A DNA stretch of 64,000 bases from Bugula neritina (GCA_964035545.1 OZ037765.1:18042995-18106994), one strand, 5' to 3'. Shown: positions 4,101 through 63,700, counted from the stretch's first letter. Made by a program: numbers and translations. The notes: generated by a model not told the origin, from the sequence alone.

Positions 4101-4610
4101 TGTGTTTTCTTTGTTAGTAAATAAAAGTAACGTATCAGAAAGCACATTTTTGTAAAAATGAAGCAAAATCTTTACATGCAACTTTAAAAATGATTCTATA
4201 AAACTTAATTCTTCTAGTTAAATATTATTTTAATTAATTTTTATATTTTGTAGTAAAGCATTATCTTTATCATACGTAGACAAGCTCCAATTCCATTGTT
4301 GATTTGCATTCCATCCAAACTAATGAACTTTACAAACTAAGCTACACGGATCCTGGCAAATCGTTAAAAGACCTTCTATTGCGCATCTATTACATGAAGG
4401 CCAATTTCACAAGCACAGCTATTATAAGAAAGCTATATAAAAGTGCAAAAGCATGTTTTAATAAAATTTAATTTAAAAAATCGTAGTTGATCAATAAAGC
4501 AGCAGCAACAACAGCAACAACAGCAGCAACAACAACAACAACAGCAACAACAGCAACAACAGCAACAGCAACAACAACAGCAACAGCAACAACAACAGCA
4601 ACAGCAACAA

Positions 4611-4657
<47 letters not shown>

Positions 4658-4665
4658 ACAACAAC

Positions 4666-4708
<43 letters not shown>

Positions 4709-5650
4709 CGGAATGCTAATGTGTTTTCCATTTACAGTGTAAATGAAAAACACATTAGCATTTCATTGCTGTGCTTTTCTTGGAAATATTTTTTTTCAAT
4801 TAGTAGTTTCAGTCATAGCATGAAACCATGAATTCATGGTTTCTTTAAAATAATGTAGCAAAAACTCTTTAAAATATAGATAATTACTTGATCATGTATG
4901 CTAACACAGCTAAACCACTGCCTCATTAACTATATACACACGCATATATACAAGTAGCAGGCATGCACTCCAAGACAGTGCCAATTATTGTATACAGTAG
5001 AGCTTGACCAATGGTGACAGCCAACACAACAAATTATTAATGGGACTTATATCATAGCTGCCAAACCACAAAAATGCTTTTAAGTTTATTTTCTTCAAAA
5101 CTTTCATGAAGAAATATTTTACAAATATTTTTTTAGCTGCTGATATGTGTGCTTTTACCAAAATATCTATCTCCTAAAACAACAACTCTATAGCACAATT
5201 AGAATTTTAAGTAGCACACAAACTTAAAAATTTTTTAATGAGTTTCCTCTTTATAAAAGGGTTTAACCAATTCACTTTGCGAGGACACAACTCTTAATTA
5301 TGAAGTGGGTACCATGGACATTGGAGATAGGTCTATTCCGTTTTATCTTTTTTGTAAACATAAAATATATGTACTGAAAGTTTTTGGCTTATTACGATAA
5401 ATTTTCCGGAATTGTTAATAACAACTAGATGTCCACTTACAAAAATAACCTGGAATAGTTTTATAGCGTAATGGCCGATATTTTTATTGGGCATTAATAA
5501 TTGCACTAGCTCCGTAATATTTATGACTGGCGGGCATGCAAGGCTCACTACACAGTGTTAAGTTGCTGACTGAAATACCTATTCACAATGCATTTGCAGT
5601 TTCAAAAATAGTGACTGTATATAGTCTATAATCAATTATGTAAATAGATC
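1190..5650. repeat. Degenerate local duplication: about 1190-2400 resembles 3300-4490, and about 3010-3295 resembles 5335-5650
   Basis: Many shared blocks in direct orientation, e.g. ACAGAATCTTGATCT, GCTAAAGTGTTGATAAGTGGG, TTGAAGAAGGATG, GATCCTGGCAAAT, AAAGCTATATAAAAGTGCAAAA and CTGACTGAAATACCT. Roughly 75-80% identical by eye. Confidence 0.85.
4499..4709. repeat. Compound (CAG/CAA)n microsatellite
   Basis: Mixed ACAGCA/ACAACA units followed by pure (CAA)n. It accounts for the poly-C, poly-T/A and poly-Q ORFs in the track. Confidence 0.98.
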
Positions 5651-8325: not shown

Positions 8326-11300
8326 TCAGCCCTTCACAATTTGTGTGGGACTACATTAATATTGTAAGCAGAGAAAAAGCATGACAGCCAAGCATATGCA
8401 GCATACTCCTTATATTTTTAGCATAGAGCAAATAAATGAAACTCACGAAACCATGTTGTTCATTCCATGCATTAAGCCCATAGACATCTGCATCATAGAT
8501 GCTAAACCTGCACTTGTACTAGGCCTCTTTATCTGTTTAACTGAAAGAATACACATGGTAAAGAATACAATTGGTATTCTTGTAAATGATATGCAGTAGC
8601 ATAACTATGCATTGTCTGATTACTATGTCAGTGTAAGCCCTTAGCTATGTCTTTCCAGAGCTAGTGGTGAATTTCTTGGTTTAGATACTATCTTCTGATA
8701 TACTTTAAATGTCAGTGCAAACAGTTGCGTAAGGCTGTTGTATTAGTTACTATCAGTGTTTACAGTGTTTACATGCATATAGAGAGCTTCAATTCGAGTT
8801 TATTCAAATAAATCGAACCAAGCTATGGTGAAATGTAATAACTTGTTTTCGTTCAACAGTTGCAGCAATTGTTTTAGTCATGCAGCAACACTTTGCTACT
8901 AAAGTAAAGATGTTTCAACAAACAAATTTACCAACAGCCATGATATGTAGCTTTTAGGAAATTGTCTATTAAGCATGCCATCATTATCATTTCTATGAAT
9001 AAAGTTAAAAATATTATCACTAAAATAAAGATTTTATAGCTCATAAAACACGTAAACCCAAAACTGTATGAAGAATCAATAAATTACTTTCCCTACCCAA
9101 GGGTTTGCAGGCTTTTAGCTTGTATTCACTGATGTCATAAGATTTAGCAAGTCTACAAAGATTTGCTACGTAATCCTAAAAATAAAATTAATGCATAATA
9201 ATTACTTAATAAAAGTACATATTAAAAGTTAAACAGATGTGGTCAACAATAAATATTTGAAAATGCACTTGGAGTTGTCTACTTATTGTTGCAAGTTCTT
9301 GCTCTGTTTATTAAACTGAAATATATGCCAACACAAATGTCTTACTAACTTTATAAAATAATTTGCAAACCTCATAACTCTTTATCTCTTCAGAAAGAGT
9401 TTCAATTTTATCTTCTAGAGCTTTTCGAATTCTTTTCTGTACTCTTATTCTGAACTGTAACCGCTTTTTAGCAGTGACCAATAAAGCTGTAACAAAAACC
9501 ACTTAGGTTATATGAAATCCATGTTTAGGGCGATCAATCAATATCACTGTAACTGTTAATTTCTTAGGTCAAGTCAAGTATAGTAAGTCAAGTATAGATT
9601 AGGTTCTGCTATTAAATTTCCAACTTCAAGCTAATTGCAGGTGGAGCTAACAGAGGTCAATACTTTGTGTAATAACTAAGACACCACAAATTTTATTTCT
9701 CATAATTTGTTGTTTTAATGTTAATTCAGTAGCAACCTAGCGTGAATATTTGTAATAATTTACAGCAAACTACTTGAAGGTATATCTAATTTCTTAGAAG
9801 TGAATTTCTATTATTAATAATTTAAAAAGAACTAGCTTACTCTACTACCCAGCACTATAGCATCTTATAAAGGTGCTCTACTAAAATGCTTTTATAGAAC
9901 ATTGTAACAAACTACAGAAGCTGCTACATCAGAGAGTTATTGTTATTCACTGATTCTAATTTGAGAGATCAGATTATTTTGCTAACTTGTGTAAAAGCCT
10001 GTTAGTTCTCAAGCTACATTATTTCACAATATTGAATATTCTTCCAACTTTCAGCTAAATATTTCAGCCAAATAATATGTATATTATATTAGAGATTGTT
10101 GTTATAACATGACAACACCTGTATATCCATATACTCATATATAACTATGTATAATTATGTGATCACCACTGTGAACTGTCTAACATTTCTTTCTGTTACA
10201 TATTATTCTATAAATACAAATTGTTAGTATAATATTAAGTACATATGCAGCACTAAGGTCATATAAGATATAGTAGTGTTTTTAAAATTAATCCGCCTTA
10301 AAAACACTAACACCACTTTAATCCTAGTTTAATATCTTCTAGATCAAAGACTATAAACATTTTTTAGCTGTTCTAGTAGTAACTTTCAGTTAGAATTGAC
10401 ACTTCGTTACAGTACGTTGCTGGCTTGGTGAAAGCTGTGAAGGTTATATATGCAGGCATACGGCAAGATAAATATAGTAATTTTCAGCGTCTGATGACTA
10501 ATAGGCAACAGGTTAATAAGCTCTGTTTTTTGTAATTCTATAACCCAATGTACATAATACAACCTGCTAATTTAATAAAATTTCAAATCCATCCCTAACT
10601 ATGAGCACCAAACCATGAAAATTTATAACATATGCTCACAATAAAGTCTTTAACCATTATAATTCTTTATATATGTTTGAAAAATTATCATGCCTCTAAA
10701 ATTTGCTCTTTAACTAGCCACAACACTGGTATAGGTACTATACAGCATTTTAGAGTATATAAGTATAAACTGCATGAAGTTTTTAAGTACTTGGAACAAT
10801 ATTTGTACGCAAGTTAAGTTTGTATGCTGCTATACTCAAATTAGATTAAAGAGGGAAATAAGAAATATAAGATGATAGTACAAGCTAACCATTGAACACC
10901 CTCAAAATTCTCCATAGTAAGAATATGACTAGTATAGTGGCCCCATTATTTACACTTTCTGGTGAAACCCCATAGATGAAGTAAATGTCCATAGCAAAGG
11001 ATATGAAAATCACTATCCCATCAACTACCTAAAATAGAGAATACATACATATGGAATATATCAGCTATGAATATTCATAGCTATGTTTCTTTAGTTAAAA
11101 TAAACAGCCACAAAAACACAATTTGTGTTATCATTGACGGGATTGAATTAATTTTGCCGATATTAATTCTATGCATGCAGTAGAATAAAGTAATATATAA
11201 TATTCTACTATGAATCAAGTGTGCCTACACACTACATTAATCTTGAGAGATTAAGACCCGTGCAAGATCATAAATAAGTCAGTAGTCAGAATAAATCATG

Positions 11301-14300
11301 CAGAGGGCAAATGATATTACTAGGTGAGTGACACCAAGTACATAAATATAAATGATGCAAATGATGTGAGTAACTTATAGTTGAAGTATTTACCATGTTT
11401 AAGGTAAATCGATATGTTAATTAAAATTCCTTAGTGAAAAATGGAAGGAAATTTATAAATGGATGGTTTCTAAATCTAAAGGCTGACCAACAGTGTATCA
11501 ACAAATTAATGAAGTTGAAAATAAGTTAGCCAATGCCTGTTTAGTTATAACTCATGTAAGTTAAAATCAACCATTTATGTTGTCCTTTTATGGTAACTAT
11601 ACAAACCGCAATAGGTAATCTAAAAGGAAAGGAAAATTGCAAGAATTTCTTTAGTAAAACATCATAATTTCTTATGCAAGCTTATTACATACAATAAGCA
11701 CAACTGTATATACCTGCAATTTTCTTGATAAACCTATATAAATATTATGATATAATATTATACACCAAAAACTTAGCAAAAATGACAAATTTGGCAATGA
11801 TAAAATTTAATGACAAATTGTTGACTAGATATTTATGGATGACACCAATTAGAACGTATTTTAGTGTCATAAATGTCATTTATACTCAACAAAGTCATGA
11901 ATACTTATGGCTGCATTAACTACTATACTAACTATACTGTAGATAAAATACTTGTGCAGACAAAGACATGGGAGCAGCTTTCAAGGTATTCCTGTAACTG
12001 AGGCAGGTGTTTCTACTAACATCAACTTTATTAAGTTATTTTGCAGCAGTATTATAGGCAATTTAGTGTGATAGGTGATGGGATTATAGTAGTTCAATAC
12101 TATTATAGCTCTATAAGTATAATAATATTACAGAGTAAAAGTTATATTGGTATAAAATGATAATTTAAATCATTGAAACAAAGCACTAACCTCAAGTTTG
12201 CCTTTAAAGTATTTTATCCCCATAGCAAATATTTTCAAAAGTACCTGCAAAATAAATTAGCTCTAGATGTTAGATTGGATCAAATCAACTTAATCAATCC
12301 TGAACATAGACCTTTGATACAGTCTAACTTACATTACCTTATATTATTAGTATAATGAAAAAAATTCAAAAATGATATTCTTAATTTGGAAAGTATCCAA
12401 GTTTATAAGTAATTAGAACTTTGACAACAATTGAGTAATTAGCAATAATCTTTTCATATTCAAATACTGACAATCATGAAAGTATTTAGCATTATATTAT
12501 ATTTATCCACTTTGTCGTAATATCATTCAGGTTATAATCTAAAAATTATTTATTTGTTGGTAAGTGTCAAAATCAAGTGAGATTTTGATCAAATGCTTGC
12601 TTTCTAAGCCAATTTGTTGTTATTTACTAAAATAGCATTCTGGTGTGCTAAAATGTGGATGGCAGATCATATCAAAACATCCCTTACTAATCACTAAATT
12701 ATATATAATAAGATCATTAAATTAAACTTAATGCCATCATAAATTATACTACATTATGCTTTAGCTCAATATTCTAACTAGTCAGACTTCTCAGTTTAAT
12801 CTCGTAGAACATCTAAACAGCAGTAGAAGTCAATTCACAGCACAAATATTATGTGCATTCTCTACCTCAGCCACCATGATAGCTAGGATCACCACACTAG
12901 TTAAATGGAAGGCGTGGGCTATGTTGAGCAATAGCGTGATTGTGGGATTGGTGCCTTCTTCAGCTTGCCCTGCTGCTCGCCGGTTTCTAACGTGCAGTTC
13001 CTGACTGTGGTTGAGAGAGTTGAAATCCTCTTGCCATATACAGCCACTGTGAGTTAGTAGTCTAGTAACAGTAACTAAGTTCGACTCATTGTATTGTTTC
13101 AACTCAATATTGCCTTTACAGTTTGCTTGCAGCTCTCTGGTCAACTCATTAGCTGCTTTTCTTCCATCTTCCAGATATACTGAAACACCAAAATAGTAGC
13201 TTGGATATTGGCCTTAAAATACAATAACTCAACCACAACCTCATGCAGTATTATAGTAAGAGTTAGGCCTAATAATGTACCGTTATTAGCGTTATTTATT
13301 TTAAGAAGGTGCAATGATACCAACAACAATTAGATGAGCATTGTTGAAACAAAGCGAAAATTCTTTTAAAAAAGAAGTTGCATGTAGCCTGTTGCATGTT
13401 GAATCTAAGCTATGCATTTAGAATAACATGCTAAACAACAAAAGTCCAAGTCTTGTTAGCAAAAAATAAAATGCAATACATTTAAAAGTATGCTTTGTAA
13501 CTTATCACATTATAAATGAAAGTAAGTGAATGTATAATTGTAATGCCTTTAGAGAATATAATTGCATGCATTGACTTACAGTTTAGAACATGTAGATCTA
13601 TTAACAACATGGCCAACAGTATGATGACATCCACAACCACTAGCACAACCAGAAACACCTCCAATGGCGTACTCTCCAGAAATCTCTCCAACCGAGCCTG
13701 AATTCTACAGCAAAGACTTTCCATATTATATTATGCAATACAATTATGTATATAATATATAATATATTATGTATGTAATAAATGAATATTATATTATGAA
13801 TATTACATTATGCAATATAATTATGTATATAATATATGTATATAATAAATGTAACTGTTTCCCTTTTTAATGAATATAATTACATTTAAAATAATAAATA
13901 TAATACTATTTTACATACTAAATATGATTATATTGTATGTGTGCTGAAAAATGTGAGAGTAGGCAAAAGTTGAAAAAACTTGCGTGAGTTTTTCTAACAT
14001 AATTGCTAATGCTGGCACATTTATGATCTAAAAAAGCAGTTTTGTGGAACTATTTTACATAAAAAAAACTTTGAAGGCTTTTACAACCTCACTACACACT
14101 TTATGTTCAATGTACATTAACTTCGCAAGAAAAAAAACTGCAAAAAAGTTTTAAACCAATTAGTGAAGCTTACTGCATAGTAGAGAAAGTATAAATGTAT
14201 AAGGACTTTCTTATAAGTCCAAATTTTCCAATGACTCTGAAACATATTCTTTCCAACCAGTTCATGGTAACTCTATACCATTTCATGAGAACTAGTATAG

Positions 14301-17276
14301 AGTTACCATACAGTTGTCAACTCTTATTTAATGTGGTAATAGATTTGGTTTGTTTGTATCTTGTGGTATGATTAAAATAATTAAAAGAATGGAGCAATTG
14401 TATTAAGTATTGCAAATTAATAATTGCTATACAAAACTAACTTTAAATATGAAAAGTATTAAAAGGACATTAAAGCAGTGCACAAGATACCATTTTATAA
14501 TTTTTCTTTTAAACTTAACATCATGAAGCAATGTTGTTTTTCAAAGAAGATGTAGTGAAATATTATTCCAATTTCCTTTTTTTAGATTTATGGGTGTTAT
14601 TTAAAATTCTATTTACACTGGTCAAGTGCAGAAAATAAGTTAATATCTTACTCTAGGCGCTTCAGCAATGACATAAAAATACATTAAGTAAAGTGGCACA
14701 CTTTATTAAAAATGCATTTAATTTTTCTATACTCTATTCTCCTAGTTCCTACGCCAATACATCAATTATTGCAGAAATAATTTGTAAGTTTAATCTTCAA
14801 AGGTAGCTGATTTATCATTATTAGAATGTTGCAATATGTGATAATAATTATAGAGAGCTTGAAACTCATTACTCAAGTAACTAAGACTATTATAGTTTTA
14901 TTTTGAGCTTTTCACCCACTCAGATCAATAATATTGGCAAGACTCTAGTCATTTTTTTACATAATTAATACCTCTTTTGGCAGGAGTACCCCTTTGGAAG
15001 TTGTTGCTCTATAAAGCCAGGAAAATCAAGTTGTCAAACACTTAGCTATATAGTGCTATTATTAGAGCAGTCTACCCTGAACTTTTCTATGGTGGGGGGG
15101 GGGGTCATTGTGTCACACAAGACTTGAGACTAAGTATCCTTAATCACTATTATAGCTTGCCTTTATCTTTCTTTCTAAAGAGTATTTTTATCTTTGACCT
15201 GGTGACTCTACGCTACACTATACACTATACACTAGACACTATACACTAGACACTATACACTATACACTAGACACTATACACTAGACACTATACACTATAC
15301 ACTATACACTATACACTAGACACTATACACTAGACACTATACACTAGACACTATACACTATACACTATACACTATACACTAGACACTATACACTATACAC
15401 TATACACTATATACACTATACACTATACACTATACACTATACACTATACACTAGACACTATACACTATACACTATACACTATACACTAGACACTATACAC
15501 TATACACTATACACTATACACTATACACTAGACCCTAGACACTATACACTAAACACCAGACACTATACACTATACACTAAACACTATACATTATACACTA
15601 GACATATTATACACTAGACATATTATACACTAGATATTATACACTATACATTATACACTAGACAATAGACACTATACACTATGCAGTATACACTATACAT
15701 TATAATACACTATACACTAGACACTATACACTAGACCCTAGCCACTATACACTAGACACTGGACACTATACACTAGACACTATACACTAGACACTAGACA
15801 CTATACACTATACATTATACACTAGACATATTATACACTATACACTATACACTATACACTAGACACTAGACCCTATAGACACTATACACTATACTCTATA
15901 CACTATACACTATACACTAGACACTAGACACTAGACACTATACACTATACACTATACTCTATACACTATACACTATACACTATACACTATACACTAGACA
16001 CTATACACTGCACACTATACACATCAAGGAGCATTTGGGAGAAAGTTCAAAATTAAAAGGTTTATTCATTCCTCAGGCATAACCTTGACTAATCTACTAC
16101 AACATAGGCTGTAAAAGCTACACAGATTATACTAACTCAAGCTTCAGGCATACAACAACACTCAGACTTAAACAACTAACAGGTCAAGTGAGTTTGTAAA
16201 ACGTAATTAATAGCATACATAGTGAAACATATCAAGAGGAGATTACTCCGGAATGCTTACTTTGTGTTCGAGTGATAAAGCACGTCATCGTTGAGTGATT
16301 TCAGTTCTTCTGCTATCACATCTGTGTCAGCGCTGTCTTGCCTCAGTGCTTTGTACAATTTGTCATCCAATTCTAGCAGCTTGGAGTCAGCATTGTTACT
16401 TGACCTGCAGTGATACAGCATATGCGCTATTAATTGCCAATAACTTTATACGAAACACTACATTAGTTTATCATAAAGATAATATCTTTGAAAGCAGAGA
16501 AATATATTAGATTATGATATCTAGGGGTCAAAATTGTTATTCTATAAATCAATATGTAATCAATATTTATGTTCACAAAGCATTTATATGTTCTACAAAT
16601 TTTTAAGCATAATTCTGCTTTGAAACTTCACAATAAAAACAGATTAAATATTTGAAATACTACATTTATTTAATGATGCATACTCTGTGATGTATGGGGC
16701 CTGAAAACATAGGTCAAGATGGTTTTTATGAGGTTTAACAAAAAACTGAATTACAAGCTATATCGTATGTCAGAATGTCATTATAGCCTATAATTATATC
16801 ATATCATTATATCATATCATTACATCACATCGTTACATCATATAATTATATCTTATCATTATATCATATCATTATATCATATCATTATATCATATCATTA
16901 TATCAAAATTACTTATCAATCAGTCTCTCCGCCACACATTTTCAGCCTATTGATAAGCGTGACACAAATCACTTTTAGCTAAAGATAATAAATTATTTTT
17001 CATGCAATTAAACTGTCTTCAATCTAATTGATTATATGGCAACTGACAAAATATTATTTATATGTTTTTTTGAACTGTTAGACATAATTCAAAATAAATA
17101 CATGTTTATTACATAGCATGTCTACAGCACTTACTATATATAGTGTCTACAATATCTAGAATATTCACTTACAGTACCTCTCATATTTATTTACAGTATT
17201 TATTATTTACTAGTGACTGCAACATTCAATCTATTGATATATTACTGAGAATTTTAACTTACTTGAATTTACCCAT
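8326..17276 (-). CDS. HVCN1: Voltage-gated proton channel (Hv family, Hv3-like variant lacking S4 R1), about 367 aa, 10 coding exons
   Basis: Phase-consistent GT-AG exons on the - strand: 17263-17276 (MGKFK), 16261-16404, 13580-13704 (S1 LVVLVVVDVIILLAMLLIDL, with the D112-equivalent), 12866-13179 (long loop and S2 AFHLTSVVILAIMVAE), 12191-12244 (VLLKIFAMGIKYFKGKLE), 10890-11028 (S3 VVDGIVIFISFAMD, S4 LLWRILRVFN), 9371-9486 (coiled coil), 9097-9175, 8447-8540 and 8326-8350 (stop). No S5-S6 pore domain or phosphatase domain follows. The last two exons are the least certain. Confidence 0.88.
15214..16022. repeat. 7-bp tandem satellite (ACACTAT/ACACTAG), about 800 bp, in Hv intron 2
   Basis: More than 100 units in two main variants, with occasional CATTAT/GACCCT variants. 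Confidence 0.98.
16792..16905. repeat. 13-bp tandem repeat (ATTATATCATATC)
   Basis: About 8 degenerate copies. Confidence 0.85.
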
Positions 17277-25800: not shown

Positions 25801-27677
25801 TTGAAAGTGACAAGAGGATTTCTCTTTATTTACATTTAACTAAGGATATAGTATAACTGTATGTATAGACTATAGAGTATAGACTAACAATTCTAGCAAT
25901 GTTTAGAAGTATTCCCTGTTTTTGGTCACAAAATGTTCACATCAGGACTGCAATGTATAAATATAAATGTTATTATCTTTCATGTAGCCTTTTGTGAATG
26001 TTGTACTTGCAGATGAAGCCTGAGCTTGTTGAAAGGTTACGTGTAGTAGATAATGAGCTGGGTAGTGGTACATCAGCTCTAGTAGCTCTTATCTTCAATG
26101 GAAAGATGTACATTTCTAATATTGGTAAGCCACTACACTCATTTGCTCATCAATGTTTCATCCTACCTTCTACTAGGCTAGTACTAGTGGACACTATGTG
26201 CACAAATTGAAATTTGTGTTTTGAGTTCTTTATGTCATGGACTAGTATGTTTCTATCTTATTTTAAGGCAACAGCCGTGCCTTGCTCTGCAGAACAGAAA
26301 ACGGCAAATTAAGAGTTGAGAAATTGAATGTTGACCATACTTTACAAAATGAAGATGAAGTCGAACGGCTACATCAATTGGGGTTTCCTAAAGAACAGCT
26401 AGTCAACAGTACCCGATTTGGACAGCAGCTCTACACACGATGTATTGGGGACTACAGTGTGAAGGGTGGCTACAAGGACAATGAACAGATGAGGTTGGCT
26501 ATTATTACCTTTCTTTTCAATACATAATTTATTTTCTATGACAAGAGTTAGGTAAAATCTCACTTGCTTTTTTATCCAGATGTTTCTTTATAGGTATGTG
26601 GTGTACTTCTTTTTTGATGTATTTACTAGGGTATAGTTAAAAAACATAAATTTTATTTTGCCTTATTTGTTTTACTTTTCACCCAATTGACATAATTTCT
26701 AAAATATGTTTTCTTTAGAAAACATGTCTTGAGAGAGCTGTAATAACTCATCACACACAATTGTATGCAGTTCCACCAAACAGTTCTGTATTTGTCAAAT
26801 AATAGCTTCCTCTTATATTAGAAAAGTAACTTGTAGTTGGGAAATTTTCACAAAGTTTTCATGCAAATCTTTGTCGTTCAACGTAATCTCTACTCCATGA
26901 CTATGCGATGTTTGATATTCAAAGTCTGCAATATTAATTTTCTGTTTTAGTTGTGCGGTGTCAGAGCCTGTGATTGCCATACCCGATCTGGAAAATCCCA
27001 TCACCCTTGACGAATCTTGCAACTTTCTTTTACTAATGTCAGATGGGGTTTACAGAAGTTTATTTGATGCCACGGAGACTGGGCATGTAAATGGCGACAT
27101 TGCTGGCATTGTAGCTGCAGAGTTTCCAAGACAGTCAACTTTAAACGGTGTTGGCCAGGCTGCCATTGACAAAATTACAAGGACTCATCACGATGCATTT
27201 GCTTTGGCATTGCCAGGTGATAGCAGGCATAGCAAGTGCTCTTCTAGAGATGACATGACACTGCTTATTAGGAATTTCAATTACAGCCTGAAAGCTCACA
27301 ATGTAGAAAAGGTACCTTCATCATTCCCATTGCCAGCTAATCACCAGATTGAAAGTTCTGAAAGTACACCAACAGACACTGTGGCTGCACCAATTGATAG
27401 ATACAACATCACAACAAACCCATTCTTTGCTCAGTTGAAGTACTCGCTAGATTCATATAATCTGGACTCTAATCCAGACTCCATAGCTGACTCTCTCAAG
27501 TCTACAGGCAGCACATCAGCTCTTGAACTAGACGCTGATGGACGCTTAGAACCTTATGTCAGCTTTAAAGACTTTGATGCTGCACTAGAAGCTATGAGTG
27601 ACCGAGAACGACAGAAATTTGAGCAGAGCCTGGTTCCAAAGATGGATTGTGAACCAATAATTGAACACCCAGAATAA
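22881..27677 (+). CDS. TAB1: TAK1-binding protein 1 (PP2C-fold), 7 coding exons
   Basis: Exons 22881-23168, 23754-23890 (TWLDDLP...SGVGFAYN), 24366-24519 (YLYGVFDGHSG...AEILLGQL), 24606-24707, 26013-26124, 26268-26493 (TRCIGDYSVKGGYKD) and 26951-27677 (LMSDGV, RDDMTLLIRNF, C-terminal GRLEPYVSF resembling the TAK1-binding GRVEPYVDF). All phases are consistent. The first exon and start codon are less certain. Confidence 0.93.
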
Positions 27678-51190: not shown

Positions 51191-52303
51191 GTAGCAAAAA
51201 TGATGTTTTCTCCGTTAACAAGTGAAAGAATAAATTCTCCAACTGAGTTGACGGAAGAATCTTGTGAACAAGAACTACCAAGTAGAATATACCCTGGAAG
51301 TTTAGACAGATACACTACCTCAGACGTTGCAAGTAGCTACTTGTTACCACAAAACTCCACGCCCAACAGCACCAATCTATTCCCATATAGATTACCTCAG
51401 ACTTCACAGGGACTAGAAAACAATGTCTGGCATTATCAAAGCTCAGCTGGATCCCCCGACATGATCTCATGGGTAGATGCATCTTCGAATGCAATAAGTT
51501 CGTGGCAACCAGAGCAAGTCCAGTTTCAACACTCCATCTCTACCCAATACAATAAGAGTTCAGACAGAGACTACACTCAACTTCGAAATAATCAGGGTTC
51601 GTCTTTATCTTCTCTCTTATCTACTACAGGAATACCTTCTTTAATTTCAAGTACATCAATATCCCCGCTGCTTCAACCGAGCTCCTCTTTTATGCCAACA
51701 AATATTATAGCCCCTCTGTCTCATCAGCCTTCAGTTTCAGAGTTTAAGAATGTAGTTACTAGTTCCACAAGCATTGCACCTTCAACAAGAAGCAATTACA
51801 CCACTCCCTCTCCGAGGGGTCGAAGGCAAACTGGTAAAAGTGCATGCGAATGTCCAAGATGCCAAAAGATTGATAGCCTGGGGCCAAATGCATCGCATCT
51901 CAAAGCTAAAGGGCCACACGATTGCCATGTTCCAGGGTGTGGTAAATCATACACCAAGACATCACACCTCAAAGCCCACCTTAGGTGGCACACCAGGCCT
52001 GAGCGGCTTCACATTTGCCAAAGGAACTCCTGTGGGAAGCATTTTGGGACAGCTGAAGAATTACAGAGGCATGCTCAAAGTCATTCTGAAAGCCAACGGT
52101 TAAGCTGTAAGTACTGCAGTAGATCATTCCAGAAAAATGATTCTCTTGCTAAACACCTCAGGCAGCATGAAGCTGACAACCAGAAGGATAGCATTGATCG
52201 TAAAAATATGAGCAGCACTAACCTAAAATCCGAAAAGGAAGCAAGTAATAATAATGATGATAGAAGTGAGATGCACATGAAGACCAAACAAGAAGCTGTA
52301 TAA
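51191..52303 (+). CDS. Sp/buttonhead-family C2H2 zinc-finger transcription factor (divergent), main exon
   Basis: 367-aa ORF with an S/T/P/Q-rich N-terminal region, a buttonhead box (CECPRC) and three C2H2 fingers. Finger 1 ([25 protein letters not shown]) is canonical Sp. A splice acceptor sits at 51189-51190, and a short in-frame first coding exon may be 50496-50516 (METLKTN|gtgagt). Confidence 0.88.
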
Positions 52304-55826: not shown

Positions 55827-56848
55827 ATTCTGTTTGCAGACGACACAAATCTTTTTTGGAAGAGCAAAGATTTAAATGCTGATATTGGAAATATAAATTC
55901 CTTATTAAATAAAGTTAATAACTGGTGCATTGCAAACAAACTAACTCTAAACTTAACGAAAACAAACTATATCATTGTTAAAAACTACCAAAAGAATTTT
56001 GTACTTAACAGTACCATCCATATTGACAATATACCTCTCTCGCCTAGCTCAGAAATAAAATTTTTAGGTGTAGTCATCGACATTAACTTAAACTGGTGTG
56101 CTCATATAAATTCTTTAAGGACTCAGCTCAACAAAGTAACTGGTATGATATACTTAGCTTCAAAGTTTTTACCATACAAAGCTTTGATTTTATTATATAA
56201 CAGTCTGATAAACAGCAAACTTACATATTGCTTAGAAGCCTGGGGAAATGCCCCTAAAACCCACCTGAACAAGTTGCTTTTAATTCAAAAACGCATTATT
56301 CGCATTATTTTCCACAAATCACCTACTGAACACACGTCACCTCTATTTATCAAAGCAGAAATTCTTCCTATTGATCTCTTGTATATCTACCGTCTATGTC
56401 TTCTTGGTCATTCAGCTTATTATACTCCATCTCACACCAAACAACCACCAACTTACCTCACCAGACATTCTGAACTTTCCTTACCCTTACCTCTCTCTAC
56501 CTCCGCAGCAGGTCATCGTCAAGTGTCCTACCAGATGTCTAGCAATTGGAATAAACTACCTCCGACTTTAAGACATCATCAAAGCTTTGCCACATTTAAA
56601 ATATTGTTGAAAAAGCACCTACTAAAATCTTTAACTTAATCTGAATAAATAGTTCCCACTATTTTTTCAACTGCCACTTGGGCCCCGCTCCTTGAATAGC
56701 TATGCTACTGAGCACATGGGCCCCCATCTTGATATTATATATAAATTGAATTTAGCTCTTTTTGTGTTACTGTTGTATATTTGTATTTTTTTGTCCTTTT
56801 GTTTTTTTTGTTGATGGAAATAAAGAAAACAAACAAACAAACAAACAA
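55827..56848 (+). mobile_element. 5'-truncated copy of the same CR1/L2-group LINE
   Basis: Aligns to about 62294-63315 with only about 7 substitutions seen by eye plus T-tract length changes. It starts at the ILFADD codons and ends in (AAAC)n. Confidence 0.95.
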
Positions 56849-57779: not shown

Positions 57780-60700
57780 CTATTTCTTAGTTGCAACTTT
57801 CCTAGTTTGATAGTCAGGTCTAGTGGCAGCATTATACTCATCTACCAGCATCTGCACTACATTACGGGCATCATCAAACTCGTCAAGATTGTCTGAAAAA
57901 ATGGCTTCCTTTCTGAACTGATCTAGAAAGGCTCCTCGTTTTCGGAGCTTGTCATAAGAACTGAGAGTTCTTGAAAATAACTAAAAATACAAGTAAAAAA
58001 TATTTTACTCAATCACAAGTATCAATGCCGGAAAACTTTTTTAAGATAAAATAAACATTATTTCTAATATTTACAAAACATAGTGTAGGGCCACATAACA
58101 GAAGTGAAATGCTTAGGAAAAAGCATTAAGAAGCCTTCAAACAAGATAGAACAAGTTTCTGTGCAATGTGCAAAATGATTAAGAAACCTGTTGCAGTTGT
58201 TTTCAGACATTATTTTTATAACGATATTTGTATAAACAGACAGAAAGTTAGCCAAAATCAACAGGTGCTTGCTGATAAATTGGGGAAGGGAGCTGTGCCT
58301 TTGTTGCTTGACACTGTAATATCCCTGGATAGTACAATAGATAGAGCCAAACACAAGCAAACGACACACCCTTAAAAATCACCCACATAATTTAAACTGG
58401 TAAATTGGAGGCCCTCTATAATTTAGTAAATAGTGTATTGTAGAGGAGCTATAATTAAGATCAAAATAAACAATTCATGGTGAGCTTACAGTATTGATGC
58501 TTGTGTGGTTGGCCAGCATAAGCCCGCTGACTCTGTGACTGGACTGAATATAAGGGGACTTCCTGGAGAGAGCCACCTGAATACTGGCAGGGCCCCAGGG
58601 TATGAACTGTGCCAACTTTCTTTCTCTGATCCTCTGTAAACTCTTGTGTACCTACAGACCAATAAGACGTCTCTAAGATCTAATACATAATCAAGAGTTC
58701 CCTGTTCCAAGGAATTCCTATATATGTATGAAGTAGCAAAAGGCACAGATAACATGTTCTATGCCATCTTAAAATAGCTCACTAATGAGGATTAGAAACT
58801 CAAGTCATCACACAATAAAAATGACCGGCCTTCAATGTATCTTTAAAATTGCTTAAGGTGGGGATATAGATAAATAGTAATCATTTATAACTAAAATTAC
58901 TCTAAATTTGCTAATTAGAAAGCCAACTATGAGTTCAGTGGTCATCTACAGCCCCAATGCTCCCCACCTACATAACGCCAATTATTAATGTAATGATGTT
59001 ATATATAGGTATATTACTATATATATATTGTACCAAAATAAAAGATAGCATCTAAGTGGGAAGAGTCCAACTGGAATGAACCATGCTAACACCCTGTTAT
59101 GGTGTTTAGACAACCTGATTTTTTCACCTCATCAATTCATATATATTTTTATAAAACAACATATTTTAATAAATTATTCACTGTTATAAAAACACAAAAA
59201 TTTAATAAAAAAAATCAATAATAGGGCAATTAATTACATTCCTCTAATGGGGAATCAACTTTTGCCTGAAATCGGAAAATTTATCTCAGTCTTCCGTACA
59301 AATAATACATTCTAATATTAAAAATATTGGCAGTTGGCAGTTGGCTTTCAAGCTGTTAAGAGGTGTTTTGAACAAGCTCACACAATACTCAACATTACTG
59401 GACAGCTTTCTATTAGGACTCATTAACAGGAGGGGACAGTATAATTTCTATGAGCTGTCCCCAAATTGGGTAAGTGTTTAATACATGATTGCTTACTATT
59501 ACTTGCCTACACCATGCCCCCCAAAACTAGAACTGATTCAACAGCATCAGATATTGATGCTACCATGAAAGAAATACTTCAACAACTGAAAAAGATTAAT
59601 AATAGGATTGAGATAATAGAAGAAAAGGTGGACAGTATAGAGAGTAGTCTGAACTATCATACAGAACAATGGAAGGAAGTGAAAGAGGATATGGATCAAA
59701 TAAAGAATACCATTCCAGCACTGAAAGGAAAGATGGAGGAGCACGAAATTGAAAAGGCAAATAAGATGGCAGAAATACAGGGCGTACCCCATCACCAAGA
59801 TGAGTCCCTGAAGGATATAGTAACAAAATTAGCTGAATTGAATGATGTACACCTCACTCCAGTCAATATTGATATGGTTTACAGAAATAAATCCAAAAAG
59901 TCTATTATTGTCAAGTTTATTCAGACTCATATCTGTCAGAACTTCATAAGATCATTCAAGGCTAAGAAAAACAAGTCACTTACTAGTAAAGAACTTGGTT
60001 ATAAAACTGCATCTAAGATATATATCAATGAATACCTCTTATACCCAACTAGACAACTGTTCCACAAAGTCAGAGAATATAAGAAAGAGAATAACTTTAA
60101 ATTTGCTTGGACAATAAACCAAAAAGTCTTCTTGAGAGAAACGGAAGGTTCCAAAGCCATCCACATTAAGTCCCTATCTGATCTCTAAGATGCTTAAGAC
60201 GCCAGTATTTATATAATCGAAATTGTTTTTCATATTCTAACAAAATGGAACTTTGTAATACCAGCAAACATTTCACTATAGATGACCTAAACAATATTTC
60301 TTGTAATGATTTTCGAGTGCTTCACTGCAATATACGCAGCCTTAGAAAAAACTTCAATAACCTTTTGGAATTACTCTCAATTGTAAATTGTTCTTTTCAT
60401 GTTATTGCCATAAGTGAAACTTTTCTCTACTCCAACGAATGCAATTACTTTCCGATTTCAAATTACTCTTATATAGGCTCATGCCGTGACTCCAGAGCAG
60501 GTGGATGTGGGATATATGTGCACAGTGGCCTGGCTGTAATTGAAAAACTAGAGCCATTAATTGAGGGTTCAGAGGCAATCTCTTTGTTAGTGGCCGGCTT
60601 GGATGAAGTCCCATTACGTATTACTGCCATATATAGACAACCTTCGTCTGACACTGGTAGGTTCACTGATGACCTGCACAATTTTTTACACTCTATTTCT

Positions 60701-63700
60701 CATACTGATCACAATCACATTATCACTGGTGATATTAATATTGATATACTTAAGCAAGAATCTGATAGCTACACTGACCTATTACATCAATACAGCTACA
60801 CTCATTTAATAGAGCACCCAACTCGCACTACCCAAACCTCCAGCTCTTGTATAGATCACATAGCCATAAATTTCTACAGTAGTAACGTCATTAGTGGTAC
60901 ACTTGATAAAGATATCTCAGATCACTTTCCGGTATTTGCCTTTTTTGAGAATCTTGTGCAACCTAAATCTCAAACCTTCAAAAGACGCAGTTATAGATCA
61001 CTTTGTGATATACAGCTAAAACAAGAGTTTCAAAACTGTGACTGGAGCAAACTAGTATTTAAACATAATGATCCAATAGTAGCATACAGAAATTTCTTGA
61101 ACGAAACATCTCATATATTTAACAAATTGGCACCTTTTCAAGAAAGGACTTTTCATTTCAATAGAAAAAAGGTGAATAACTGGATCACGGATCGTTTAAA
61201 AAAAGAAATTCACAAAAAAGACAGGCTTTTTTCACAACACAAAGCTTTTCCATACAGCCCAAAACTTAAGCAAGCCTACATTAAGCAAAGAAACAAAGTA
61301 TCAACCTTAATTAAACAAGCCAAGTATAACTACTATGATAAGCTGATTTCTAACCAAGCAGACTCCAGAAAGCTTTGGAATACAATCAACAATGCTTGTG
61401 GAAGAAAATCAACCTCTCCAAGCTTTCCAGTAAAGCTAAAAGCTGACTCAGAAATCATTACCCACCATACAGAAATAGCAAACTATATAAACAATTATTT
61501 CACTAACATTGGAAAGAACTTAGCCGATAAAATACCAAGTGTTCCTGAGATCTCAGTCAATGCCAAAGATTGTCCTTCATTTTATTTTCAGCTGGTAGAC
61601 AAAAACAGAGTTTTAACTGAACTAAAAAATTTGAATGAAAATAAATCAGAAGGCTTAGACTTGATCCCAGCGAGGCTAGTTAAACAAAGTGCAACTTACC
61701 TTTGTCAGCCTCTCACACATATTATAAACTTGATAATTAAATCAGGTGTCATTCCTAATGAACTGAAAGTAGCCAAGATTTTGCCATTTTACAAAAATAA
61801 AGGTGACAAACTTTTATGTAGTAATTATCGGCCTATCTCAATACTTCCAGTTTACTCTAAAATACTTGAAAAAATAATCTGCAAGCAATTAAATGAACAT
61901 TTAAACCTACACAAAATTTTGTCGGTTTCTCAATTTGGCTTCCAACAGAAGAAGGGTGCACAAGACGCACTGATTAAGTTTTCAGACCAATCCTTCAAAG
62001 CACTTAATGACTCATTAGTAATATTGGGTATTTTCATTGATTTCTCAAAAGCATTCGATACAATCAACCACAATATTTTGCTACAGAAACTACGAGATTA
62101 CAATTTTGATTCTCACTCCATAAGTTTAATCCAAAACTACTTGACCAATCGAACACAGCATGTTATAATAGAGAACAGTATATCCAATTCCTTGCATATT
62201 ACCTGTGGAGTTCCCCAGGGCTCTATCTTGGGCCCTGTGCTCTTTCTGCTGTACATAAATGATTTAGCTACCCATTGTCCTTTATTTGATACTATTCTGT
62301 TTGCAGACGACACAAATCTTTTTTGGAAGAGCAAAGATTTAAATGCTGATATTGGAAATATAAACTCCTCACTAAATAAAGTTAATAACTGGTGCATTGC
62401 AAACAAACTAACTCTAAACTTAACGAAAACAAACTATATCATTGTTAAAAACTACCAAAAGAATTTTGTACTTAACAGTACCATCCATATTGACAATATA
62501 CCTCTCTCGCCTAGCTCAGAAATAAAATTTTTAGGTGTAGTCATCGACATTAACTTAAACTGGTGTGCTCATATAAATTCTTTAAGGACTCAGCTCAACA
62601 AAGTAACTGGTATGATATACTTAGCTTCAAAGTTTTTACCATACAAAGCTTTGATTTTATTATATAACAGTCTGATAAACAGCAAACTTACATATTGCTT
62701 AGAAGCCTGGGGAAATGCCCCTAAAACCCACCTGAACAAGTTGCTTTTAATTCAAAAACGCATTATTCGCATTATTTTCCACAAATCACCTACTGAACAC
62801 ACGTCACCTCTATTTATCAAAGCAGAAATTCTTCCTATTGATCTCTTGTATATCTACCGCCTATGTCTTCTTGGTCATTCAGCTTATTATACTCCATCTC
62901 ACACCAAACAACCACCAAATTACCTCACCAGACATTCTGAACTTTCCTTACCCTTACCTCTCTCTACCTCCGCAGCAGGTCATCGTCAAGTGTCCTACCA
63001 GATGTCTAGCAATTGGAATAAACTACCTCTGACTTTAAGACATCATCAAAGCTTTGCCACATTTAAAATATTGTTGAAAAAGCACCTACTAAAATCTTTA
63101 ACTTAATCTAAATAAATAGTTCCCACTATTTTTTCAACTGCCACTTGGGCCCCGCTCCTTGAATAGCTATGCTACTGAGCACATGGGCCCCCATCTTGAT
63201 ATTATATATAAATTGAATTTAGCTCTTTTTGTGTTACTGTTGTATATTTGTATTTTTTTGTCCTTTTTGTTTTTTTTTTTTTTTGATGGAAATAAAGAAA
63301 ACAAACAAACAAAACAAAAATAAGTATGAGCTTGTAAATAGAATATTTTTCAGTAAAGTTTAGCCAGGATTGGCAGTTATCATTACACAATGCTGAACTC
63401 TTCATTTTCTGGGATATGTTTTGGGAGTTGTTCTAAGAGGCATATGTACAGGAAATTAGTTTGTAATTTTGTGTGCTTTAAAAAACATGTATTATAAAGT
63501 TCTCAAGAGCTAATCAAGCCTTTTGGAGACAAGGTGACAGCTGGTACTCACATTGAAAGTAAAAATGAGCAGGTTTGACACAAAAAGCATAAAAGAAAGT
63601 GTTAGAAAGACAGGTGCAAGAAAGGTGATCACATGAGATCAACCTTTAGAAATAATCCACAAGAACTAACATAACTTTTGTTAACAACAAAACCATTACA

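Follow-up and report, generated by a model that had tools for sequence, protein, structure and literature searches.

What kind of proton channel, if any, can be built on a voltage sensor that lacks its first gating arginine? The question is raised by a gene in a stretch of AT-rich eukaryotic DNA (~30% G+C) from the bryozoan Bugula neritina (GCA_964035545.1, OZ037765.1:18042995-18106994), which is 64,000 nucleotides long and is referred to below as the window. An initial annotation of this DNA had described, at 10890-13704, a voltage-gated proton (Hv) channel with three coordinated changes: leucine in place of the first arginine (R1; R205 of human Hv1, hHv1) of the fourth transmembrane helix (S4), and methionine in place of both E119 in S1 and F150 in S2. 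Our analysis favors, with a probability of roughly 60%, the reading that this is a functional R1-less Hv gene of a spiralian subclade without the S4 proline of mollusc Hv3 channels, and that its product would be a proton-selective channel with a shallower voltage dependence than Hv1, which may pass protons at rest.

Voltage-sensor residues and their conservation

Exon-sized open frames with AG/GT borders on the minus strand of the window make up a gene of at least nine coding exons, extending from 17276 to 8443 (Table 1). The helices S1 to S4 are encoded by exons 3 to 6; the range first proposed thus delimits the voltage sensor correctly but takes in only four of these exons. Translated from the exact exon coordinates on the minus strand, S4 reads VIFLLWRILRVFN, with LLWRILRVFN as its core. 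Residues were paired with E119, F150 and R205 of hHv1 through HMMER alignments to the Hv1 chains 3WKV and 5OQK and through a family-wide profile alignment. These alignments confirmed the TTA leucine codon at 10918-10920 in the R205 position, and they placed methionine in the E119 and F150 positions on firmer ground than the spacing from which it had first been deduced. The equivalents of V109, D112, D123, H140, E153, E171, D174, V177, D185, W207, R208, R211 and N214 are Val, Asp, Asp, His, Glu, Glu, Asp, Val, Asp, Trp, Arg, Arg and Asn, respectively; all of these except the two valines had been listed as retained in the initial annotation, and the alignments agreed with it throughout. The V178 equivalent is Ile, and the four gasket positions thus read Val, Met, Val and Ile. 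Leucine at R1 breaks the full RxWRxxR signature, the ..WRxxR..N part of which is kept; the W, R, R and N of S4 are invariant in all four full-length orthologues. The S4 sequence given earlier was correct through the N214 equivalent, but the glycine that followed it came from intron read-through, and the spliced protein has alanine there, as seen in the public protein P0049.

Searches were performed with single exons and then with P0049, while the joined spliced model was used only for translation, the estimation of nonsynonymous (dN) and synonymous (dS) divergence, codon coordinates and the tree row. P0049 ('HVCN1 [Bugula neritina]', 360 residues) was the top match of a word search with the window exons aligned to a single-exon paralogue. 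Its locus (L007) in an independent assembly of the species, GCA_010799875.2, and the window run collinear for more than 13 kb, with 75-87% identity in the DNA around the exons, and L007 includes a PP2C-type neighbour. Upstream of the Hv gene, the window has an open frame of 239 residues, and the equivalent gene in L007 encodes a PP2C-type (PF00481) product; local synteny would be conserved if this frame belongs to a PP2C-type gene. The eight mapped exons have equal lengths in the two assemblies and are 92-100% identical, and all GT-AG sites are kept. The window protein and P0049 share 342 of 353 aligned residues, and none of the 11 differences falls on a key site. The gene is under purifying selection (dN 0.014, dS 0.135, dN/dS 0.10 between the window and the independent assembly). 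By this comparison, the window derives from a bugulid of the B. neritina complex or a very near relative, closely similar to the sequenced B. neritina individual yet distinct from it.

The same residues were found in other bryozoans. P0049 is 60% identical to the Watersipora subatra protein P0070, 60% to P0069 and 44% to P0071. The full open reading frames (ORFs) of P0069 and P0071 run uninterrupted on contigs of 2.7-2.8 kb (L006 and L005), which must be transcripts because they are intron-free for a gene with at least eight introns. P0049, P0070, P0069 and P0071 all have Leu-Leu-Trp-Arg in S4 and Met in the E119 and F150 positions, and the Leu/Met/Met state is shared by a further orthologue, the Dendrobeania fruticosa transcript GJXY01243660 of the transcriptome shotgun assembly (TSA) archive. 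Eight additional bryozoan cluster representatives of exon 4, covering the loop and S2, all show His..Met..Glu with Met in the F150 position, and five S3-S4 exon pieces (P0056, P0061-63 and P0206, which are genomic ORFs) all read LLWRILRVFN. Since they recur in an independent assembly of Bugula neritina and in several further bryozoans, the residues are no sequencing error, and the compared sequences indicate that Leu/Met/Met is an old, selected state within bryozoans. That the locus might be a pseudogene or owe its form to faulty assembly or annotation is essentially refuted by these data: the frame is open across nine exons with canonical splice sites, the dN/dS value against the independent assembly is low, and the residues recur in at least five other bryozoan sources, among them the intron-free transcript contigs and the TSA entry.

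Placement in the Hv family and order of the changes

The window protein scored above the cut-off of PF00520, with the match limited to profile positions 33-109 of 241, and its sequence matched only the Hv1 chains 3WKV and 5OQK in the Protein Data Bank (PDB). Foldseek against the PDB returned weak E-values, with voltage-sensor domains as the top fold matches; single exons were too short to be informative against Pfam or the PDB, and the S3-S4 exon matched Hv1 chains at an E-value of only about 0.2. The span of the PF00520 match and the four transmembrane helices of an AlphaFold2 (AF2) model are those of a four-helix S1-S4 domain without an S5-S6 pore domain. A profile built from four orthologues was compared with 1.84 billion representatives and recovered 1127 proteins at E<=0.001; key Hv sites were tabulated in the 150 of these that were listed, together with earlier matches. 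Phylogenetic trees were built from 157 core columns, from which the E119, F150, R205 and L206 columns had been removed beforehand.

In a quick tree of 153 rows, 82 canonical RxW proteins were separated from 71 others with a support of 99, and all members of the non-canonical side lack R1 except the long-branched P0182 (70 of 71). In a careful tree of 50 rows, an R1-less clade supported at 100/99 held both the window gene and the Aplysia californica channel AcHv3, represented by P0200 (980 residues, with L429-P430-W431 as described in PMC10911540). The clade is divided into two sister subclades. The first, named LPW after its Leu-Pro-Trp motif (99/96), contains Aplysia P0200, Ostrea, Haliotis and one Tubulanus protein. 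The second, which lacks the proline (96/85), contains the window gene, its bryozoan orthologues and a second bryozoan paralogue beside brachiopod, annelid, nemertean and flatworm proteins, with Lingula, Owenia, a second Tubulanus protein, Intoshia, and cestode and trematode proteins among its members. Membership in the Hv family was upheld, as the window gene fell inside the R1-less Hv clade even though the trait columns had been left out. On these trees, the window gene belongs to a spiralian R1-less (type-3-like) Hv clade and is not an AcHv3 orthologue. The earlier label 'Hv3-like' holds in the broad sense of this shared clade, within which the gene lies in the subclade that is sister to that of AcHv3. 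The residue directly before the S4 tryptophan is leucine (CTA, 10915-10917) instead of the proline of an xPWRxxR motif, and bryozoan Hv channels have been described as having large loops but not the mollusc Hv3 proline (PMC10377628). Outside molluscs, the S4 proline has been reported only in brachiopods and phoronids (PMC10377628). We also noted a protein of the nemertean Tubulanus polymorphus within the AcHv3 subclade (P0078, XP_074660947), which has LPWR in S4, Gln in the E119 position and Met in the F150 position.

Additional Hv genes were found in the window genome (G000; 216 Mb in 321 contigs). A second R1-less gene on the minus strand at about 21.43 Mb of contig C3 (L009, G000:C3:21429000-21438000) has the S4 sequence FLIWRVIRILN, with Leu at R1 and Met in the E119 position, and keeps Phe150; it is the orthologue of the Logan protein P0075 (100/99). 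For the role of Phe150, the C3 paralogue is a natural point of comparison. A canonical Hv1 on contig C4 (L003 1009-1635; L012/L004) encodes 209 N-terminal residues, S1 to S4 (RLWRIGRVVNG), in a single exon. The genome also holds a long-branched RLWR paralogue with Ser in the E119 position and Glu in the D123 position. This bryozoan thus has at least four Hv-type genes, whereas three were stated for Bryozoa in PMC10377628. In two further candidate regions, at 10.55 Mb of C7 and 32.74 Mb of C1, the queries used brought up no Hv exon that was convincing.

The distribution of residues over the tabulated proteins bears on whether the three changes arose together. Among the 83 R1-bearing rows, the F150 position is Phe in every case and the E119 position is Glu in 73. 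The 70 R1-less rows, which like the window protein have Leu at R1, show in the F150 position Phe in 10, Leu in 45 (AcHv3 included), Met in 12, Ile in 2 and Val in 1, and in the E119 position Glu in 48, Gln in 14, Met in 4 (bryozoan rows only) and Gly, His, Leu and Ser in 1 each. The S2 phenylalanine has therefore been replaced in 60 of 70 R1-less representatives and in none of the canonical ones. Combinations of Gln, Met and Leu-Pro occur in nemertean and mollusc-type proteins, while the exact Met/Met/Leu trio is confined to bryozoans among the rows tabulated. On the tree, the R1 state changes twice, one of these changes being on the branch of the long-branched P0182, and the F150 state changes four times; with one or two independent R1 changes, testing coevolution on independent pairs is powerless. 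The tree indicates that the loss of R1 is ancestral to the whole R1-less clade, and the likely order of events suggested by the sequences is as follows. First, R1 would have been lost in an early spiralian. Second, E119 would have become Met in bryozoans. Third, Phe150 would have been replaced by Met in the lineage of the window gene, in parallel to other Phe losses in the clade. The idea of three coordinated changes as one event in this gene did not survive the comparison, since the R1 loss is ancestral, Phe loss is widespread in the clade and Met in the E119 position is also present in the paralogue that keeps Phe.

Predicted conduction and gating

In the AF2 model (predicted local distance difference test score 81; predicted template modelling score 0.67), S4 runs into a long C-terminal helix that is continuous over residues 243-314 (~70 residues). 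A helix continuing from S4 into a coiled coil suggests that the protein may form a dimer; PF16799, the profile of the C-terminal coiled coil, had no match in the Pfam search. About 85 residues, encoded by exon 4, separate S1 from S2, and the canonical Hv1 rows are gapped there. The loops of the bryozoan orthologues share a series of motifs: N-C..G-N, N-x-S/T sequons, a second cysteine (G-C-x-W), RxxR/RRKR and then A-G-P..E-G-x-N-P. The loop is probably glycosylated. The basic RxxR site is present in P0049, P0069-P0071, the Dendrobeania transcript and the exon 4 fragments. The loop is partly ordered in the model, with the conserved RxxR site inside its sole disordered stretch (residues 149-163); because both cysteines are N-terminal to this site, a disulfide could not span a cut made there. 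Members of the proline-less subclade (Lingula, Owenia, flatworms) further share a basic motif after S4 and a C-terminal module of C-K-P, a basic stretch and a Ser/Met-rich segment, encoded in the window by exons 8 and 9. Canonical Hv1 lacks this module, and the LPW rows shown either lack it or have it in a weaker form; the Ser/Met-rich segment of the module is a predicted helix (residues 337-355). A structured loop with an RxxR site and a conserved C-terminal helix suggest additional regulation or maturation in the secretory pathway.

Proton conduction would be the most likely activity of the window protein because the selectivity Asp, R2 and the S4 Trp are intact, as they are in AcHv3, which is proton-selective; the inner acidic network is intact as well. 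These residues also speak to an alternative, in which the protein is a non-conducting voltage or pH sensor of the TMEM266/HVRP1 kind that acts through its conserved loop and C-terminal module. Such a role would fit the alteration of R1, E119 and F150 together and the selection on the C-terminal module and the structured S1-S2 loop. Among the isoforms of Lingula P0072, the nearest relative outside bryozoans, some carry the NCBI name 'transmembrane protein 266', a TMEM266 cluster stands at rank 10 in the Atlas look-up, and divergent Hv-derived proteins may have lost channel function (PMC10377628). The proteins returned by the searches included no TMEM266 sequence. However, the Asp of the selectivity filter is kept, whereas TMEM266 has Val in this position (PMC4148356), and so are W207, R208, R211 and N214; Hv clusters rank above TMEM266 in the same look-up, and AcHv3, which likewise lacks R1 and has a residue other than Phe in the gasket, still conducts protons (PMC10911540). 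We regard a sensor without conduction as unlikely.

With respect to gating, two S4 charges per subunit, a charge-transfer centre without its aromatic cap and the absence of an outer partner site for R1 would be expected to give a shallower voltage dependence, the loss of Phe from the charge-transfer centre might make opening faster or easier, and protons could pass at rest. The external Zn2+ site of hHv1 is established and is the basis for predicting weak sensitivity to this ion: Met in the E119 position would take away an outer acidic site whose partner R1 is gone, and together with the lack of an H193 equivalent (no His occurs in the S3-S4 loop) this would make external Zn2+ block weak. Compensation of the R1 loss by the loss of E119, as the initial annotation had suggested, is plausible by analogy with AcHv3 and hHv1 R205A (PMC10911540, PMC10377628), and so is the leaky or weakly voltage-gated behaviour that it had proposed. 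AcHv3 shows a proton-selective leak and gating of about 60 mV per e-fold (PMC10911540). In hHv1, R205A lowers the apparent voltage dependence, and an interaction between R3 and Phe150 stabilises the open state (PMC10377628); F150A opens faster and does not leak, and Banh et al. observed a leak only with hydrophilic or multiple Ala substitutions (PMC6754559).

The same studies bear on a second alternative, an ordinary Hv channel with steep, Hv1-like gating by voltage and delta-pH, in which the substitutions are near-neutral or compensate one another. In its favor, the protein retains two gating arginines, the acidic network and the predicted coiled coil, its gasket stays hydrophobic through aliphatic residues (PMC6754559), and truncated mouse Hv1 without R3 still gates (PMC10377628). 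Against this stand the reduced apparent voltage dependence of hHv1 R205A (PMC10377628), the very weak gating of AcHv3, the sole R1-less channel tested (PMC10911540), and the joint retention of R1 and Phe in 83 of 83 canonical representatives, which suggests that these residues matter for the canonical phenotype. Hv1-like gating therefore appears improbable to us.

Several points nevertheless weigh against the reading of the window gene as a weakly voltage-dependent channel that may leak. First, single R-to-A mutants of Hv1 have been reported without a leak (PMC10911540). Second, with Met in the F150 position and Val, Val and Ile as the equivalents of V109, V177 and V178, the gasket stays hydrophobic, so that hydrophobicity predicts neither a breach of the gasket nor a closed-state leak. 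Third, the leak of AcHv3 may depend on its S4 proline, which the window protein does not have. Fourth, none of the 20 characterised channels in Table 4 of PMC10377628 comes from the proline-less subclade. Finally, splicing and expression in the window species are deduced from orthologue transcripts and selection, and both transcript ends, 5' and 3', are provisional.

A bolder version of the favored reading would see in the bryozoan Leu/Met/Met clade a new functional type derived from Hv: a largely voltage-independent proton pathway of secretory or calcifying membranes, open at rest or gated by pH or a ligand and matured by cleavage at the conserved RxxR site, in the exposed part of the S1-S2 loop, into two chains (S1; S2-S4). 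More broadly, a mechanistic coupling would link the losses of R1 and the S2 Phe throughout the spiralian R1-less clade and would explain the AcHv3 leak. We consider this version rather unlikely.

Gene structure, neighbouring features and known relatives

The positions of the exons and key codons are given in Table 1. Exon 2 differs from its L007 counterpart at 12 of 144 bases. A protein start at the ATG at 13724 was rejected, the orthologues and P0049 joining the acceptor at 13705/13704 from upstream exons. A read-through end of exon 8 (..GRESNLL..) was likewise rejected in favor of a donor after C-K-P-L and an exon beginning at 8540. The stop codon is overlapped by a strong donor in the same phase in both Bugula genomes (TGA/GTGAGT at 8443-8452 of the window; TAA/GTAAGT at 19050-19070 of L007). 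The annotated form has 360 residues, while full-length orthologues have 449-615, and the Watersipora, P0069, P0071 and Dendrobeania orthologues run on for 80-250 residues beyond the window stop. An isoform with a long tail and more 3' exons is likely from these sequences; a search for such further 3' exons found none.

Table 1. Exons and key codons of the Hv gene, and other features. Positions refer to the window, except for the C3 paralogue, whose exons are numbered in locus L009.
Feature	Position	Strand	Description
Exon 1	17263..17276	minus	ATG plus 11 bases (MGKF-K), then GTAAGT donor; motif collinear with exon 1 of the gene annotated in L007 (Bugula neritina)
Exon 2	16261..16404	minus	Cytoplasmic N-terminus; found by tblastn with P0049; AG/GT boundaries
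Exon 3	13580..13704	minus	S1 helix; acceptor 13705/13704, where P0049 and orthologues splice in
D112 position	13629-13631	minus	Asp, GAT; selectivity filter, mid-S1
E119 position	13610-13608	minus	Met, ATG
D123 position	13596-13598	minus	Asp
Exon 4	12866..13179	minus	S2 and, before it, the long extracellular S1-S2 loop with two Cys, N-x-S/T sites and an RNRR site
H140 position	12905-12907	minus	His
F150 position	12877-12875	minus	Met, ATG
E153 position	12866-12868	minus	Glu
Exon 5	12191..12244	minus	S2 end and S2-S3 linker; last residue is the E171 equivalent; identical to L007
Exon 6	10890..11028	minus	S3 and S4; D174 and D185 equivalents; R205-position Leu, then L-W-R-I-L-R-V-F-N
R205 position	10920-10918	minus	Leu, TTA
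L206 position	10915-10917	minus	Leu, CTA; directly before the S4 Trp
W207	10914-10912	minus	Trp, TGG
R208 (R2)	10911-10909	minus	Arg, AGA
R211 (R3)	10902-10900	minus	Arg, AGG
N214	10893-10891	minus	Asn, AAT
Exon 7	9371..9486	minus	Post-S4 helix and start of coiled coil; clade-typical basic motif (..FRIRVQKR.RK..)
Exon 8	9097..9175	minus	End of coiled coil, up to conserved C-K-P
Exon 9	8443..8540	minus	Conserved C-terminal Ser/Met-rich helix; TGA stop 8443-8445 with overlapping GTGAGT donor
C3 paralogue exons	near 5796-5671, 4265-4164, 3826-3773, 3638-3507, 2899-2822	minus	R1-less paralogue in L009
Open frame upstream of Hv gene	26958-27677	+	239 residues
Zinc-finger frame	51200-52303	+	367 residues
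Retrotransposon	59466-63106	+	ORF1 and ORF2
ORF2 fragment	56145-56639	+	3' fragment
Microsatellite	4436-4831		Trinucleotide repeat

Other features were also observed in the window. The zinc-finger frame has three C-terminal C2H2 fingers and is putatively of the Sp/KLF type, as read by eye from its translation. A putative non-long-terminal-repeat retrotransposon, read from its translation only, has a 240-residue ORF1 and an intact-looking 953-residue ORF2 for an endonuclease and reverse transcriptase; a near-identical 3' fragment of this ORF2 lies 3.6 kb upstream. The long trinucleotide microsatellite would be read, depending on frame, as runs of Val, Leu, Cys, Ala, Thr or Gln.

The window gene is already in GenBank as HVCN1, and its Dendrobeania orthologue appears in Fig. 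S1 of Chaves et al. 2023 (PMC10377628). The terms E119 and F150 do not occur in the main text of that paper or in PMC10911540; both papers may word these positions differently. P0049 and GJXY01243660 are orthologues with the same Leu/Met/Met, and in Bugula with the same exon structure, and have only been catalogued or annotated automatically. Among characterised channels, AcHv3 (XP_005094274; Chaves et al. 2022, PMC10911540) belongs to the same R1-less clade and shares with the window protein Leu at R1, an aliphatic residue in place of the S2 Phe (Leu in AcHv3, Met in the window protein), an enlarged S1-S2 loop and the retained Asp filter, Trp, R2, R3 and Asn. It differs in having LPWR, Glu in the E119 position, a loop of 299 residues and a C-terminus of 535 residues, and in its place in the LPW subclade; the window protein has LLWR, Met, a loop of ~85 residues and, in the annotated form, a short tail. 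The canonical Hv1 proteins of human, mouse and the same genome (C4/L003) share the pore-less S1-S4 domain, the Asp filter, H140, E153, E171, D174, D185, W207, R208, R211, N214 and the passage of S4 into a C-terminal helix, but have RLWR, Glu in the E119 position in 73 of 83 canonical representatives, Phe in the F150 position in all 83, a short S1-S2 loop and no C-K-P/Ser-Met-rich module. TMEM266/HVRP1, also related to Hv, combines a voltage sensor that has no pore with a coiled coil and a long tail; unlike the window protein, with its Asp and without R1, it has Val in the D112 position, a conserved S4 arginine repeat and no proton conduction (PMC4148356).

The AcHv3 leak may stem from the loss of R1, the S4 proline or a gasket defect. 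The bryozoan clade is a natural experiment in this respect: R1 is lost, the proline is absent, and Met stands in place of the gasket Phe and of the outer counter-charge. To our knowledge, AcHv3 is the only R1-less Hv channel from which currents have been recorded. The bryozoan protein and its Phe-keeping paralogue could show how much R1, Pro, Phe150 and Glu119 each matter for the gating charge and for the leak of the closed state. At the level of the family, the loss of Phe150 tracks the loss of R1, AcHv3 included; this is a modest observation, and the replacement of Phe in 60 of 70 R1-less representatives against 0 of 83 canonical ones provides a testable lead for the biophysics of voltage sensors.

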